A stretch of 64,000 bases of DNA, from assembly GCA_964247055.1 (NCBI GenBank), contig OZ176050.1, positions 13,144,001 to 13,208,000 of the forward strand. The letters run 5' to 3'. The notes beneath the pieces were generated by a model. That model did no database searches, had not been told where the DNA came from, and worked only from the letters and a program-made list of their open reading frames with translations. Positions 30,519-64,000 of this stretch are shown here, piece by piece (the first letter of the stretch is position 1; every line of letters begins with the position of its first letter). This stretch comes from Paragordius varius (taxonomy: Eukaryota; Animalia; Nematomorpha). A program made the position numbers and the translations under genes.

Positions 30519-33500
30519 ATGGGCCGTAGATCAAAATCACGATCAAGGAGTAAGGAGCGTAAAAAGGAAAAGTTATAATACTTTGTAAATTATAGGAAGC
30601 ACAAAGATCACAGAAAGACTTCAGATAAAGATTATCATCATAAATCGTCAAAATCGTCTCATGCAGATAAAGAACGCACATCTGAAAAATCGAAACATAT
30701 GCCCGCCAAAATAACAAAAGGTTTTATTGTATAATAATTTTAGATATCAAATTAGCTTCAAATCCAGATAACCCATTAGAAAAAGTGAAAATAATGGATT
30801 CATTAAATTCCACAGGATTTAGCTCTCAAAGCTTTGTATCTTCCAAGGTATTGATATTTTAAATTAAATTATTTTTCAAAATTGCATAATTTTCTCGAAT
30901 CACTAAGTATATTGCACTCTTGACAAGATTTAGAAATGAAATTTTACCGAGCGTTTATTAATATATATACAAATTGAAATAATTAATTAAAAATTTTGAA
31001 GAATCAATATTTTTCGTTGATATGCATATAATTGTTCTTCTATTATCCCTTAAACAGCAGGGGTGGTTTGACTTACATTATATTTTTAATTTAACCATTT
31101 TTTTCCGTCAACTATGTATAACTATCCTAAAATATTTACTTACATGTGCAATAAATTGATTAATATGCCGTTGGTCTCCTAATCATATAAATTAAAACCT
31201 TATATTCTGTGGTCCGTATCATTTCATTTAATTACAACTTAAATAATGGGTTATCATAGTGGCCAACTATTACAAAATATTATTTCCTGACATCAAACCC
31301 AGGTATATCGAGATGTATCAAATAGCAGACCAAGGTCGCCACTGTCCACAAAAGATGTCCCTTGCTGCACTTCCATACACCATTCAATGGTGGTTCAAAA
31401 ACAACCACCTAGTTGCGTCCGGGCTGAGGTTAGGTTTAAGGATATAATGATACGTTATAAATGAATAAATTAATGTTGTTTCATTTTTGATGAGAATTAA
31501 TGTTTAAATTGCCTAGCTTTCCTATGTTGGTAAGTTAGGCCAACACATGAAATAATTAGGTAAAACCTTATTTTCTATATGTTGCACCCTATTTGCACAT
31601 TAATACCTGTAATGATATAGCATTGTTATACAAGCTGTGAGTAATGTCATTATTGTGTTATTCATCCAGATATTTTTACCATATCTGGGTGCTGATATTC
31701 CACTGTTTATAGGCCTATCCGTTGGGTCGGTACCTGTGCATATGGAAAATTATCTGGATTCTCTGTCCGTTGCCCTCCATCTGGCCTCACGTCTTTGCGC
31801 TCTGCTCGCTACCAGGCGACGCAGGCGCTTTTGTAATCTTTTGCCTTTATATAACTCGATTTCCTCGATGAGTTCATTTCGTATTTTATCGCTTAGAGAT
31901 TTTATGTACTTAAGACTGCATCAATGATTCTATCGTGCAATTCTACCATACTATGATCGTTTATATTTCCATTGATCTTTACCCATATTCCATTCCAGTG
32001 CCTTTAAAGGCAAATGTTTACATGTGTGATAAAGAATGAGTGTTTAGGTTGCTTAGCTATACCATTTGCACTTCAAGAGTGTCCTTGAACACTTCAAGTT
32101 GGTCCTTGAACAATTCAAGTTGGTTCTTGAAAACTTCAAGTTGGTCCTTAAAATTTATAAATTTTAATTTAACCATAATTTTTGCATTTATTTTTTTATT
32201 TTATTATTTATTAACCTAATTTTCTTTATTTATTATATTTATTCATTTAAAAATAAAATTTTTAATTTAAAAAACTATTTTGTTTCAAACTATTTTTTTT
32301 CAATTAAACAAAATTGTTGACGTTTAAATGTTTTTAATGAAAAATATTAATTAACCCAGAAAACTTATATATTTTTTCATTTCGTGGTAAAATATTATAA
32401 ATATCCAAAATTATTTAAAAAATTAATAAAGATATACGGTTTCTCAAAGATTAAAAGTTGATATCGATTAAAAATTCATGTTATAAAAGAAAATAGGTTA
32501 ACAATAAAATAGATGAAATATTTACGATTTGAATGATAAAAGTTAAAAACTAAACAAAAAAGTCAAAGGACCAGCTTGAAGTGTTCAAGGACCAACTTGA
32601 AATGTTCAAGAACCAACTTGAATTGTTCAAGGTCCAACTTGAATTGTTCAAGGACCAACTTGAATTGTTCAAGGACCAACTTGAATTGTTTAAGGGCCAA
32701 CTTGAACTGTTCAAATTCCAAATTGAAGTGTTCAAGGACACTCTTGAAGTGCAAATGGTATATCTCAGGCCGGTAACTTCTTAGCCCAATACAAAACCTA
32801 TTTATGATTCACACATAGCCATATCCAAAAATAATAAGAGTAAGTCCTACATTCTATATGTTAAACCCTGTGCGTATTAATACGTGTAATGATAGCATAA
32901 TTGTTCAAGGGGGTAAATAATGTCATTAGTGTCCTAGTCATCCAAATATTATCATTATATCTGGTTGTAGGTGTGTCATTAGGGTCAGTGTTTGGGGCTA
33001 TGGGTAATAGTCGGGAATCCCTGTTGGTTGACCTTCTTCTAGCCTCCCGTGTTCGCGCTCTAGCTCGCTCTAGGCGACGCAAGCGCTTTCGTTCTCTTTT
33101 GTCTTTATATGACACGATTTCTTCTTCGATAAGTTCCTTCTTTACTTTCCCGCTCAGGTGTTTCCAGGTCCCATTCACCACTGCATCAACGAATCTCTTA
33201 TCGGATAATCCTACGCGGTTCATGAATAGCGCAATTCTTCCATACCATGATCGTTTGTATTTCCAGTGCGCGTTATCCAACTTCCATTCCAATGTGTCTC
33301 GCAGGGGGCTCCTAAAATTATGACTAATTCGATGGGCCATTATGTTCAGACCAGCTAGGGGAATAGCTAGGCGTATGGGTAGCATCATTGTTTTTTTGTG
33401 GAGGTAGCAAGTGGGTAGTTGTGAGTTTTTTGACGGCGCGTATGTTTCGCCAGTGATGCGTCGGAGGCATTTATTTATGAAAACCTGTATTTTTCGGGTG

Positions 33501-58649: not shown

Positions 58650-60770
58650 TATTTTGATGGAAAAATGTATCAGGATTATAATGGTGCTTTTGGTTTTATC
58701 CCTTACGAGTGTTGTAAGAAAAAAGTTATTTACACTTTTGTGCTAAGTGGTCCATATCAGAAAATGGCAAAAGTTGAACACATTTTTGGTAATATTTTAT
58801 TTAAGAGCTAAATGCTTCATTTTAAAAAATATCACTAAAAAATATCATAACTACTTTTAAAAGCAAAACACTATTTTTATAATATTTTAATTTTTAGATG
58901 TGGGCTCCAAAGGTCCCAAATTTTTTGCACCTCTAAAATGAGCTGGTCTTAGAATAAACACATGATATGCGAAATAAAGTCTTTAAATATATGCTGAATT
59001 TTGACATCAAAAAAATATTTTTAAAAAATGCATATCTTTAGAAAATTTTAATTTTCAGCGAATTTGTTGAAGCGTACTTCCTACTATTTTTAGGCATGAT
59101 AGAAACGGTATAAAAACGCTCTTAATAATTTGATGAAACTGAACGTTTCTATCAGAATCTTAAGTTAAAGTTTCGATTACTTTCATATTTTGGTTTATTT
59201 TTATATAACAACAAATTATATTTGACATAAATTTAAGGCAAACGTTAATCAAAATCTGAGTTTATAGAAATGTTCAACATTATATAGAAAAAGTCTTTAT
59301 ACTAGCGTAAATCTCGTGCTGCTACGCAGCGCGAGGAAGTCCTTCTGACTTCTGGGGGGGGGGGGGGGGGTTATTTGAAAAAAGGGACAATAAAATGATC
59401 TACATATGTGGATTATTTCGAAAAATTATTTAATAGCTATGATCTCATAGGAATCTTAAAACGGTGCATTCATACTAATTTATTGTTTACTTGGGGGAAA
59501 AATAGATTTAAAAAATTATTTTTGTGGACTTTGTTTTTTTTGAAAAAAATGGCATTTTACGGGGGTAGCGGGTAAAAAGAGGGCCTAAATCAAAAAAGTG
59601 AGTCGACTATGTTCAGCGCGATCAAAAATAAGTAAACAAAAATGATATTTGAAATTGAATGGTCCAGCAAGTTCTCCAAAAAATTGACTTAACCCATTTT
59701 TCACACGGGGTGGGCCCAACTGGGGACCTAATTCCAAAAAAGGGCGAAGCTATTGTCGGGGCATTCATTAATGATTATATTTTTTCGATATTTGAATTTG
59801 ATTGCGTTCACCGGTTTTCCGGAAACAGATCACAAAGTTACATGAGAAATCAGTTTTTCGCTGGTAGCTCCTTATCCAGCAGCTATCATCAAAGAAACGC
59901 CTGACTAAAATTTTTACGTAGAATCCATATTGAATTTTTACGGTCTCATACCTAGGGCGACAAATCGATTTTAAAAATTATTTTTGTGGACTTTGTTTTT
60001 TTAAAAAGGTGGCATTTTACGGGGGGAGCGGGTAAAAAGAGGGCCTAAATCAAAAAAGTGACTCGACTATGTTTGGCGCAATCGAAAATAAGTAAACAAA
60101 AATCATATATGAAATTGAATGGTCCAACACGTTCTCCATTCACACGGGTTGGGCCCGAACTGGGGGCCTATTTTAAAAAAAGGGCGAAGCTATTGTCGGG
60201 GTATTTATAATGATTATATTTTTTCGAAGTTTGGATTTGAATGGGTCTACCGTTTTTCCTGTACCAGATCACAAAGCCAGCATTTTTTATTTTTATAAAT
60301 ATATAGATAAAAGCGTTTTTATCGTTTTCATCACACCTAAAAAGGAATAAGTGCAGTCCAACCATGCTAAAAATTAATTGCAAAAAGTGCATTTTGAAAA
60401 AGTATTTTTTTTATGTCAAAATTTAACATTTTAAATAATTTATTGCGCAATCCTAGCATTTTTGCGTTTATTTTAAAAGAACTACCCCATTTGAGAAGAG
60501 CAAAATTTTGGGAATTTCGGAGCTCACATCTAAAAAATGAAATGTTATAAATATAATGTTTTGATTTTTATAGTTAGTTTATGATATATTTTAGTGATAT
60601 TTTTAGAAAGCACTTGACTTTCATGAAAAAATTTAATTACAAAAAAATGTTTTTTTGCCATTTTCTGAGATGAAGCAATTATCAAGTGATTACTTTTTGA
60701 TACCTAAGCCCAAAATTCAAAAGCACCATGAGATTTTTGATACATTTTTCTACCGGAATATGTGCATTTC
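58650..60770. mobile_element. Old foldback/long-TIR element interrupted by the Helitron
   Basis: ~58650-59122 is a diverged reverse complement of ~60310-60770 (e.g. AAAAATGTATC..TGGTGCTTTTG, CAGAAAATGGCAAAA, TTTAGATGTGrGCTCC, AATTTTGACAT). Termini not resolved. Confidence 0.65.
59302..60307 (-). mobile_element. Non-autonomous Helitron (1006 bp) with internal ~460-bp tandem duplication
   Basis: On the minus strand: A|TC 5' end at 60307, CTAG|T 3' end at 59302, and a GC-rich hairpin CTCGCGCTGC-GTA-GCAGCACGAG (59313-59335) 7 nt before CTAG. No TSD. Direct repeats at ~59500-59840 and ~59960-60275. Confidence 0.85.
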
Positions 60771-61230
60771 ATTGTGATATTTTTGTGAGCACTGTGTAAA
60801 TTAATGGTACTCAAACAGCGGACCATGGGCTGGGCTCCCCTAAGAGTGCTTTGTATTGCATTGAATTATTTATTAACATTGACAAATCATCAAATACAAT
60901 CCTTTGAGTCCCAGGCCTGTTTAAAATTAACTTTAAAAATTATGGAAGGAATTGAAATGCAAAATGCACTTATAACATTATAAGGGTCGTCATGTGAGTA
61001 CAGTGACGGTAAGGAGCAAGCCTGTCACACCCTTTTGTGAATACCTAGATGTCCGAAATATAAAAATAATTTATCCAAAAATACTCGATATTTATTATTT
61101 TAAGGTAAACCAAAAGTATAATTTAGTCACCATGACATGTGTGCATTAGCAAAACCACCTTTTCTGTTTCTATCAATTATTATAAGTGATTTTTTGTTTT
61201 AAAATTTAGCTTTTTTCGATTAGAAATTAA

Positions 61231-61809
61231 CACTTCGATTCAAATTGGGGTATCTTAATACCCCAGACTAAATTTGAGTTAGGATTTAAAAAAAAAACTA
61301 CTGAAGGAAACGGTCCCATTTAAATTTATGCTTCTACTCTAATAAAAATTATATAAATATGCCAAAATATCTAAATTAAATATTGTTTTGAAAAAAAAGT
61401 TCCATGTGAAACTACTTCGACGCCATTTTTATTTTTCAAAATTCTCGCAAAATATCGTCTTCATGTAATTTTAAGGGTAAAATTAAAGCTAAATTTGTAT
61501 TTGAATTACATCTAACATTGATAGAAAAAAAGCGGTTTATTTTGTATTATTTTTCAATTTTACCATTGCACACAAGTCACTTTGACGGAATTTTTACCTC
61601 TCGCTTTTAGCTAAAAATAAGTAATACCAAGTATTTTTAAATAAATTTTTTTATATATTTCGGTTTATTAATGTTATATAAGTGCAAAATTTTGCCATGA
61701 TTTTGATTCTTTTTATATTTTTTAAAGAATTTAATTTTAAACAGGCCTGGGGTATCCAACTACCCCAATTTGAATCGAAGGACTGAAATGAATGTGTTGT
61801 ATCCAAGTG
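61231..61809 (+). mobile_element. piggyBac-like MITE, 579 bp, copy 1
   Basis: TTAA|CACTT..AAGTG|TTAA with asymmetric subterminal IR CGATTCAAATTGGGGTA / TACCCCAATTTGAATCG. Confidence 0.85.
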
Positions 61810-61941
61810 TTAAATAAATATTTTGCAAGAATCTCGTAAAATAAAAATGGCGTCGTAGTTTGATATGTTTTCAAAACTAGTTTTATTTAGATATTTTTAC
61901 TTATTTATATAGTTTATATCAGGATAGAAGCATTAAATTAA

Positions 61942-62520
61942 CACTTCGATTCAAATTGGGGTATCTAAATACCCCATACAAAATTTGAGTTAGGATTTTT
62001 AAAAAACTACTGAAGGAAACGGTCCCAATTTAAATTTATGCTTCTATCCTAATAAAAATTATATAAATATGCCAAAATATCTAAATAAAATTTTGTTTTG
62101 AAAAAAAAGCTCCACGTCAAACTACTTGGCCGCCATTTTTATTTTACAAATATTTTACAAAATATCGTCTTCATTTAATTTTAAGAGTAAAACTAAAGCT
62201 AATTATTTAAATAAATTACATTTAACATTGATAGAAATAGAAAAAGCGGTTTATTTTGCATTATTTTTCAATTTTACTATTGTACACATGTCATGTATAC
62301 GAAATTTTTATCTTTCGGTTTTAACTAAAAATAAGTAATATCAAGTATTTTTGAATTAAATTTATATATTTCGGTTTATTTATGATATATAAGTGCAAAA
62401 TTTTGTCATGGTTTCGATTCCTTCCATACTTCTTTAAGTATTTGATATTTAACAGGCCTGGGGTATCCAACTACCACAATTAGAATCGAAGGACAAAAAT
62501 GAGTGTGTTGTATCCAAGTG
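61942..62520 (+). mobile_element. piggyBac-like MITE, 579 bp, copy 2
   Basis: Same termini, TTAA duplication and length as 61231-61809. Confidence 0.85.
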
Positions 62521-63425
62521 TTAAAATGGGACAGTTTCATTCTGTATTTTTTAATAAATATTAACAATATGATTCATAGTTTCCCCTGAATCAGAGTGTT
62601 AATATTTGATTTATGACTAAAAATATCTGTAAATATTACAAACAGCTCAAATATTTTTTGTTTATATGGTGACGGCCCTTGAAACAAATAAATATTTTTA
62701 GCGACCCTTTAAATTTTTTTGGCGAGTACATGATCTAAATTTGGAAGGATTCGAAGCACCAATTTGAAATGGGGCGGCCTGTTTTGGAATATCAATTTTA
62801 TAAGTTGCTTGGGTGACCACGTTACCCTAATTTTTTTATTTTCATGTCCAATTTATATTCTATAAATATATATCGCACAAGATCACAATTTTTGCTTTTA
62901 TTTTAGGGAAGTTCGACACTCTGAAAGGGAACTTAAAAATTTGACTTTCGGAGACCCAACTCTATAATAAAAATTTATAAAATAATATTTATTTATGATA
63001 TAAAAACTTTACCTTTATAAAATTTGAATACTCATACGGTTATTTATATGGAAAAAAAATTCGACTTGCTTTGAATTACTATGAGATCATGATGTATTTT
63101 AAATATATTTTTGAACATGATATTTCTTTCAGACTTCGAATTTGGTTAAATATTTATATAAAATATATAATAAATGTAGAGAATTAAATCATAACTTTAG
63201 TACTTACTATAAACAATATTGGATTTAGAATTCCAATTATTAAGTTAATATAAATGTTTTATATCAATTTAATTAACAAATTTTTAGGATATTTTAGCAA
63301 AACAATTAAATACTTAGCTGATATTAACATGTTTATTTTATATTAACCCAAAAATTAACTGTATACATTTTTTCTGACATATAACCGATTCTAAAACTTT
63401 ATATTCTAAAACCGCAAGTGTTTTA

Positions 63426-63884
63426 ATGTTTGAATTTATACCATATGCTTTTTCTTTAATAATTATTTCGGTGTTAGCGTTATATGAAAAGCCTGTAGAA
63501 AATGACAAGGGGGTAAAAGATGCCACACCTTGTGAAGGTTTGATACTCTTTTAATATAAAAGTTTGTAAATGTATCGCCAACGAGCTTCAAGAACGTATT
63601 GATTTGACTGGAAAAGTTAAAGAAACATTAAAAATTGGTTATAATTTAATGGAAGACTCGACGCATCGCAAACAAAAATATGATACATCGTAAAATGATT
63701 TTGATTTTTCTTTCTTTATATCAATAATTAATGTATTTTTTTGTTTTAGAGAATTACGATATATCGAAATTATGGATGGTGTTTGTAACAAAATCCTAGA
63801 ATACAACGTGCATAAAGAACGGCTTGGGAGTTTGCGATACGCCAAAGGTCAAAGTGAAACCATGAGTACTCTTCATGGATTAAA
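63426..63884 (+). CDS. CNPY4: Canopy family protein, CNPY4-like (5' partial), exons 63426-63537, 63563-63689, 63750-63884; continues beyond window
   Basis: Spliced product MFEFIPYAFSLIIISVLALYEKPVENDKGVKDATPCEVCKCIANELQERIDLTGKVKETLKIGY..SELRYIEIMDGVCNKILEYNVHKERLGSLRYAKGQSETMSTLHGL. It has a signal peptide and the canopy motifs CEVCK and HxERxGSLRYAKGQSxTMxTLxGL as recalled for CNPY3/4. Confidence 0.88.
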
Positions 63885-64000
63885 GTAACACAATCATTTG
63901 TAGTAATTCACATCTGCAATTTATTTTTTATATCTCATGCTAATATATCTTAAGGAAACAATTATAACTCGTTTTAGACATGAATTTTGATCTGATACTA

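Follow-up and report, generated by a model that had tools for sequence, protein, structure and literature searches.

The window, that is, the whole 64,000-nt stretch of Paragordius varius DNA that was analysed, ends within a gene on the forward strand. Judged from the protein that it encodes, the gene at 63426-64000 is a canopy-4-like (CNPY4-like) gene, and only its 5' part is contained in the window. The features of this gene are listed in Table 1, together with those of a second gene.

Table 1. Features of the canopy-4-like gene and of a second, RS-rich gene in the window.
Feature	Positions	Strand	Description
Exon 1	63426..63537	+	ATG; hydrophobic, signal-peptide-like N-terminus; ends ..TPCE plus G of a Val codon
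Intron 1	63538..63562	+	25 nt; GT..AG; phase 1; GTTTGA...AAAAG; full sequence GTTTGATACTCTTTTAATATAAAAG, between ...TGT GAA G and TT TGT AAA...
Predicted exon 1/exon 2 junction			after removal of the 25 nt, ..TGTGAAG joined to TTTGTAAA
Exon 2	63563..63689	+	127 nt; TT of the Val codon, CKCIANELQ...KYDT, TC of a Ser codon
Intron 2	63690..63749	+	60 nt; GTAAAA..TTTTAG; phase 2
Exon 3	63750..63884	+	135 nt; A of the Ser codon, ELRYIEIMDGVC...STLHGL, AA of the next codon
Start of intron 3	63885..64000	+	GTAACA...; >116 nt; gene continues beyond the window end (64000)
Start of RS-rich (putative RSRC1-like) gene	30519-30848	+	ATG at 30519; 94-aa frame
Candidate tiny intron, RS-rich gene	30572-30595	+	24 nt; GT..AG; after 53 coding bases
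Candidate tiny intron, RS-rich gene	30721-30743	+	23 nt; GT..AG; after 178 coding bases

The open reading frame that begins at the ATG at 63426 runs for 37 residues, ending in ..TPCE, before it reaches intron 1, which is the first intron of the gene and lies 112 nt from the ATG. The mean hydropathy of residues 4-20 of exon 1 was 2.0-2.4, as obtained from simple hydropathy only. When intron 1 was read through, the translation continued as ...PCEGLILF and then met an in-frame TAA at 63552-63554, five codons in; the 25 nt are not divisible by 3. When the 25 nt were taken out, the frame was open (...TPCEVCKCIANELQ...) and continued through exon 2, across intron 2 and on through exon 3. Because read-through stops after five codons and the spliced frame is open, the 25 nt would need to be removed for the protein to be made. 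An earlier note on this DNA had described a 25-nt GT-AG segment at 63538-63562 which splits TGT GAA G from TT TGT AAA, and had claimed that its removal restores the motif CEVCK and the frame, and that read-through meets a TAA within five codons. The sequence is as stated there, and both effects were seen in the translation. The end of exon 3 was placed at 63884, one base before the end that a naive reading would give, because a donor GT follows at 63885-63886. This donor lies at the position of intron 3 of the Gordionus orthologue (phase 2, after ..HGL), and a search for exon 4 within 63885-64000 found no frame there that extends the family sequence. The intron sizes climb along the part of the gene in the window, from 25 to 60 to >116 nt.

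The identity of the gene was examined with the Pfam profile PF11938 (DUF3456, canopy), which was run on the separate exon pieces. Exon 2 matched profile positions 5-45 with 19.6 bits, and exon 3 matched positions 49-83 with 30.3 bits, relative to a curated cut-off of 21.1. Exon 3 was also searched against 1.84 billion representative proteins, which returned 164 matches, and all those checked by name were canopy or DUF3456 proteins. The top match, with 82% identity, was a 'protein canopy 4-like' of 245 aa from the horsehair worm Gordionus sp. m RMFG-2023 (XP_065318262.1 / CAK9300784.1). This protein, whose C-terminus is KTEL, in line with the ER-retention signal of the family (K/H-D/T-E-L), is also the best full-length relative, with 79 of the 124 window-encoded residues identical. 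When it was used as the query, the next relatives, which came from molluscs, tunicates and insects, were ~50% identical to it. Exon 1 shares the pattern VEN[DE][KR]GVK..CE with the Gordionus orthologue and aligns to the family up to CE. All homologues line up at the CEVC motif and at the third Cys (..GVC..), and the later Cys lie beyond the window. The naming of the gene as CNPY4-like in the earlier note is therefore supported by the DUF3456 matches and by the Gordionus canopy 4-like protein as the best relative. The host gene would thus encode a canopy-4-like (DUF3456, saposin-like ER) protein, and splicing of intron 1 would fuse its signal-peptide exon to its domain exon.

All GT/GC..AG pairs in 63440-63660 that leave the frame open were enumerated and scored by a profile made from 24 canopy proteins, among which no nematomorphs were included. 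The 25-nt splice (63538-63562) obtained 152.5 bits, followed by a 31-nt alternative (63532-63562) with 134.8 bits, and all remaining frame-keeping pairs obtained at most 117 bits. Exons 2 and 3 without exon 1 scored 126.7 bits, and the joining of exon 1 via the 25-nt splice added 25.8 bits to this value. No other frame-keeping donor/acceptor pair, the use of which the earlier note had counted against its reading, reached the score of the 25-nt pair. Among these pairs, CEVCK was restored by 63538-63562 only, and all eight aligned homologues read CEVC[KR] at the motif. In the alignment of the canopy family, exons 1-3 tile exactly, and the sole missing column is the split Val codon.

The 31-nt pair also keeps the frame and shares its acceptor with the 25-nt splice, which gives one form of a rival in which a different splice is used. 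In the other form, the acceptor at 63562 would be joined across a longer intron to some exon further upstream that escaped recognition, which would place 63426-63537 outside the mRNA coding sequence. We consider this rival, in either form, to be very unlikely. The 31-nt splice would remove the first Cys of CEVC, which is kept in all eight aligned homologues, and this is reflected in a loss of 17.7 bits. Against an unseen upstream exon, exon 1 has an ATG, a signal-peptide-like core and the pattern that it has in common with exon 1 of Gordionus, which itself ends at the matching codon position, and the 1.5 kb upstream consist of repeats. Taken as a whole, 63538-63562 is very probably a genuine GT-AG spliceosomal intron of the canopy-4-like gene, and we infer that the 25 nt would be removed by the spliceosome in vivo. 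Two features count against this reading: the donor, GTTTGA, matches the animal consensus weakly and bears little likeness to the common GTAAGT, and no polypyrimidine tract is present in the 25-nt intron. A TTAAT or CTAA-like motif, which may act as a branch site, was recognised by eye 5-9 nt upstream of the AG in all three alleles.

The position of an intron within a gene can be compared between species through the codon and phase at which it falls. In the Gordionus canopy 4-like gene (L001 3001-6832), intron 1 is an AT-rich GT..AG intron of 39 nt and phase 1, located after ..KCE in the Val codon of CEVCK. Exact protein-to-gene mapping showed that the position and phase of the 25-nt intron are those of this Gordionus intron. 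An intron 1 at equal position and phase was identified in the rotifer Didymodactylos carnosus (59 nt), in the CNPY3 gene of the fish Clinocottus analis (771 nt) and in the mollusc Elysia marginata (1547 nt). For the fish and mollusc genes only intron 1 was used; the exon mapper gave spurious 2-nt exons at their intron 2. Two further invertebrate contigs presented acceptors at the intron 1 site, namely ...tttcag before TT TGC AAG (L002) and ...ttttcag before TC TGC AAG (L003). The check on CNPY orthologues that had been proposed earlier thus found an intron of equal position and phase in Gordionus, rotifer, fish and mollusc. By sequence comparison, the position of intron 1 is an ancient one, and the 25 nt fall exactly on it. 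The 25-nt intron would then have arisen through the shrinkage of an old bilaterian intron that interrupts the Val codon of CEVCK in phase 1.

The agreement extends to the rest of the gene. The position and phase 2 of intron 2 in the window are common to Gordionus (41 nt, before SELRY) and the rotifer (439 nt); the codon position of its donor was also found in L002 and L003, and a matching acceptor in L003. Exons 2 and 3 have equal lengths in the window gene and in Gordionus (127 and 135 nt, respectively). The exons of the two genes are 68-69% identical in DNA (exon 2: 68%), and the introns are unalignable. The Gordionus introns grow along the gene (39, 41, 89, 2302 and 623 nt), and each of the five agrees in position and phase with an intron of the rotifer orthologue (L006). 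The canopy 4 gene of the butterfly Bicyclus anynana (L004 301-1179) differs from its rotifer, fish, mollusc and nematomorph counterparts in having no introns, which could be due to intron loss or to a retrogene.

Sequencing runs were used to observe how the locus varies. The locus was contained in runs X1 and X3 (both of sample S1), X2 (S2) and X9 (S7). In these four runs the depth was even over intergenic DNA, exons and introns, paired contigs were of similar depth and no joints were observed. Given the even depth across intergenic DNA and introns and the lack of joints, the runs represent DNA. In the RNA-labelled runs of the species, none of the sampled sequence words from the locus was found. 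A transcript-derived protein of Paragordius varius was sought in protein collections with the Gordionus orthologue as the query, and none was found, with nothing closer than 50% identity. One contig identical to the window covers 63494-63696, and contigs from S1, S2 and S7 all span intron 1.

A longer intron that had been collapsed in the assembly, which the earlier note had named as a way in which its reading could fail, was ruled out, because the contigs of these three DNA samples span the site and carry the segment.

No other part of the locus varied as much as intron 1, where 5 sites are variable. One allele differs by substitutions at 63554, 63557 and 63558 and is present in X1, X2 and X9, and another, in X9, has two substitutions and an AT insertion after 63560, which extends the intron to 27 nt; GT..AG is kept in both. 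The occurrence of 25-nt and 27-nt forms suggests that a length difference of at least 2 nt is tolerated. The 2-nt insertion was present at about half the sample depth and would be a frameshift if the segment were coding. Intron 2 also varied between alleles, with 7 substitutions and one deletion of 1 nt. In the exons, 12 of the 17 allele differences were synonymous, relative to the 20% expected for random changes (binomial P 1.1e-5), which indicates that the frames on either side of intron 1 are under purifying selection. Exon 1 taken alone tells less: only one of its four differences was synonymous. The remaining three lie in the signal peptide, where each of two Ile codons was read as changed to Val, and the two changes in a single Ile codon occurred together on one contig. 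The variation in intron 1 is that of a non-coding segment flanked by constrained exons.

The stop that is met after five codons of read-through is also what would be expected of a pseudogene or a sequence error, with the 25 nt as an insertion or an assembly or polishing artefact in a dead or mis-assembled canopy gene. We regard this as highly improbable, and as marginally less probable than a different splice. An error is opposed by the presence of the segment in contigs of S1, S2 and S7, and a dead gene by the purifying selection on the flanking exons. The Gordionus orthologue, moreover, is annotated as an intact protein and has its own intron at the site. The chance of a GT and an AG at two fixed sites in the window is ~0.0017, so that an arbitrary insertion would have needed both ends at a chance of ~0.002 and, in addition, would have had to match the old intron exactly in position and phase. 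An insertion of this kind is therefore very unlikely.

Several further observations were made on the alleles. In the 27-nt allele of X9, an internal AG (..TTAAGC..) is located at intron positions 17-18 (window 63554-63556). Its use would give an out-of-frame 18-nt splice, and it must be ignored if the allele is functional. In sample S1, pairs of contigs with similar depth diverge strongly: 9 of 111 positions differ over 63494-63604, and 12 of 171 over 63667-63837. Run X2, which is labelled as another organism (organism B), carries one of these S1 alleles. The strong divergence of the alleles at 63494-63837 could be due to high heterozygosity, pooled individuals, or a mislabelled or cryptic species.

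The size of the segment, which is under the classic spliceosomal minimum, is the reason for listing a third rival, in which the 25 nt are removed or skipped without the spliceosome through programmed DNA elimination, translational bypassing or IRE1-type cytoplasmic splicing. Nothing direct speaks for it, and we consider it extremely unlikely, the least probable of the readings weighed here. The segment ends in GT..AG rather than TA..TA, and its site is homologous to ordinary spliceosomal introns of other animals. An Rfam scan of 62900-64000 matched no structured RNA family. DNA elimination is further opposed by the lack of a joined form in the DNA contigs, which can miss rare forms. The preferred reading of 63538-63562 is that of a spliceosomal intron, which would be spliced by intron definition near the 5' end of the transcript.

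Two further candidate tiny introns were located in the RS-rich gene of the window (Table 1). Its 94-aa frame is open only when both GT..AG stretches are left out, and read-through meets stops. The three short introns of the window (25, 24 and 23 nt) all begin with GTT, which is anecdotal at n=3. The G+C content of the window is 24-36%, which resembles that of the Gordionus assembly, with a G+C content of 26.9% and a repeat content of 63.8% (Gordionus genome paper). Together with the Gordionus protein as the best relative and an exon DNA identity of only 68-69%, this agrees with a nematomorph other than Gordionus as the source of the window. The 6 kb upstream of the canopy gene contain tandem and inverted repeats. 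The description of the genome as not compact in the earlier note is in agreement with the 60-nt and >116-nt introns of the same gene, the 2302-nt and 623-nt introns of the Gordionus orthologue and the repeat-rich surroundings.

Among the repeats, 59490-60276 and 61224-62525 are tandem duplications with units of ~460 nt and ~710 nt that are 84-93% identical. They hold internal inverted repeats of 42-74 nt and look like MITE-like or other transposon debris.

A lower limit of ~30 nt was long assumed for animal introns (PMC13644364). The 25 nt fall below this limit, which counts against the preferred reading. In a 2026 survey of 51 animal genomes, myxobolid myxozoans and Dicyema are given as the sole animals with introns <30 bp, with medians of 22-27 bp in the dicyemid Dicyema japonicum and the myxobolids Henneguya, Thelohanellus and Myxobolus, and such introns were tentatively tied to parasitism, to small bodies and to genome reduction (PMC13644364). 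The list of lineages with introns in the low-20s range that was given in the earlier note is therefore right in including the dicyemids, but it is incomplete, as the myxobolid cnidarians were left out (PMC13644364). The single 25-nt intron adds to the ultra-short animal introns, which are already known as a type. It resembles those of dicyemids and myxobolids in being a GT-AG intron <30 nt at a conserved position between conserved exons, with weak splice motifs and no polypyrimidine tract, in a parasitic lineage (PMC13644364). In dicyemids and myxobolids, however, most introns are tiny and the genomes are described as compact (PMC13644364), whereas the canopy gene here has 60-nt and >116-nt introns and a repeat-rich flank. 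The reported intron start in those lineages is GTa (PMC13644364), whereas the three short introns here start with GTT, again at n=3.

Flatworm microintrons provide a second comparison. These introns have a peak of 37 bp in Opisthorchis felineus and a mode of ~32 bp in Gyrodactylus salaris, and are also found in tapeworms (PMC6530080, PMC4040987). In large, non-compact genomes they form a distinct class beside introns of ~3 kb, are clustered with ordinal positions 1-2 favoured, and are easily missed under default annotation settings (PMC6530080, PMC4040987). As in the flatworms, the tiny intron here comes first, sizes rise along the gene and long introns coexist, a likeness that is based on two window genes only. 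The differences are that the introns of the window measure 25, 24 and 23 nt rather than 32-37 nt, that the phylum is another one (Ecdysozoa), and that the splice sites of flatworm microintrons are reported to be closer to consensus, whereas the donor found here is GTTTGA. In layout, flatworm microintrons are a closer analogue than the introns of dicyemids and myxobolids.

The orthologous intron 1 of Gordionus is alike in codon, phase, AT-richness, GT..AG ends and flanking exon lengths, but it differs in length (39 vs 25 nt) and its sequence cannot be aligned. The ~25 bp introns of the ciliates Paramecium and Nyctotherus are similar in length, in their GT-AG ends and in read-through stops that make splicing obligatory (PMC5014332). 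These ciliates, unlike the animal studied here, are unicellular and have essentially only tiny introns, and the trait is shared without homology or shared ancestry. We found no report of introns <30 nt in Nematomorpha in the literature searched, and the word intron is absent from the Gordionus genome paper.

By analogy with the flatworms, a class of short introns beside long introns in this genome is plausible, and the earlier note, which had suggested a second intron class, can be followed to that extent. As a kind of arrangement it is not new, since the flatworm microintrons precede it (PMC6530080, PMC4040987). The unusual spliceosome that the earlier note had also put forward gains no support from the present results. 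The 25-nt intron would be a member of a genome-wide class of 21-32-nt, 5'-proximal introns. We consider it likely that Nematomorpha are the third animal lineage to splice introns <30 nt, and the first with a repeat-rich genome that keeps kb introns in the same genes. The tiny introns would be shrunken ancient introns (39 nt in Gordionus and 25-27 nt here, relative to 59-1547 nt in other phyla) that are concentrated at the 5' ends of genes. What is new here is the deep conservation of the intron 1 position over four phyla, together with the 25-nt and 27-nt allele forms.

For the canopy gene itself, the results describe an ordinary canopy-4 orthologue with a very small first intron. The wider meaning lies in the introns. 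A minimum intron length of more than ~20 nt in aligners and gene finders would leave such genes broken or their first exons missed, and missed tiny introns could skew the apparent gene-loss and completeness figures of these genomes. A bilaterian with 21-32-nt introns beside kb-sized ones in a repeat-rich genome would weaken the link to parasitism, small body size and genome reduction (PMC13644364), and would lower the working minimum for the animal spliceosome in a non-compact genome. If this reading of the Nematomorpha is true, extreme intron shortening would not be bound to genome compaction, and would instead point to a position-dependent (co-transcriptional, intron-definition) constraint held in common with the flatworm microintrons.
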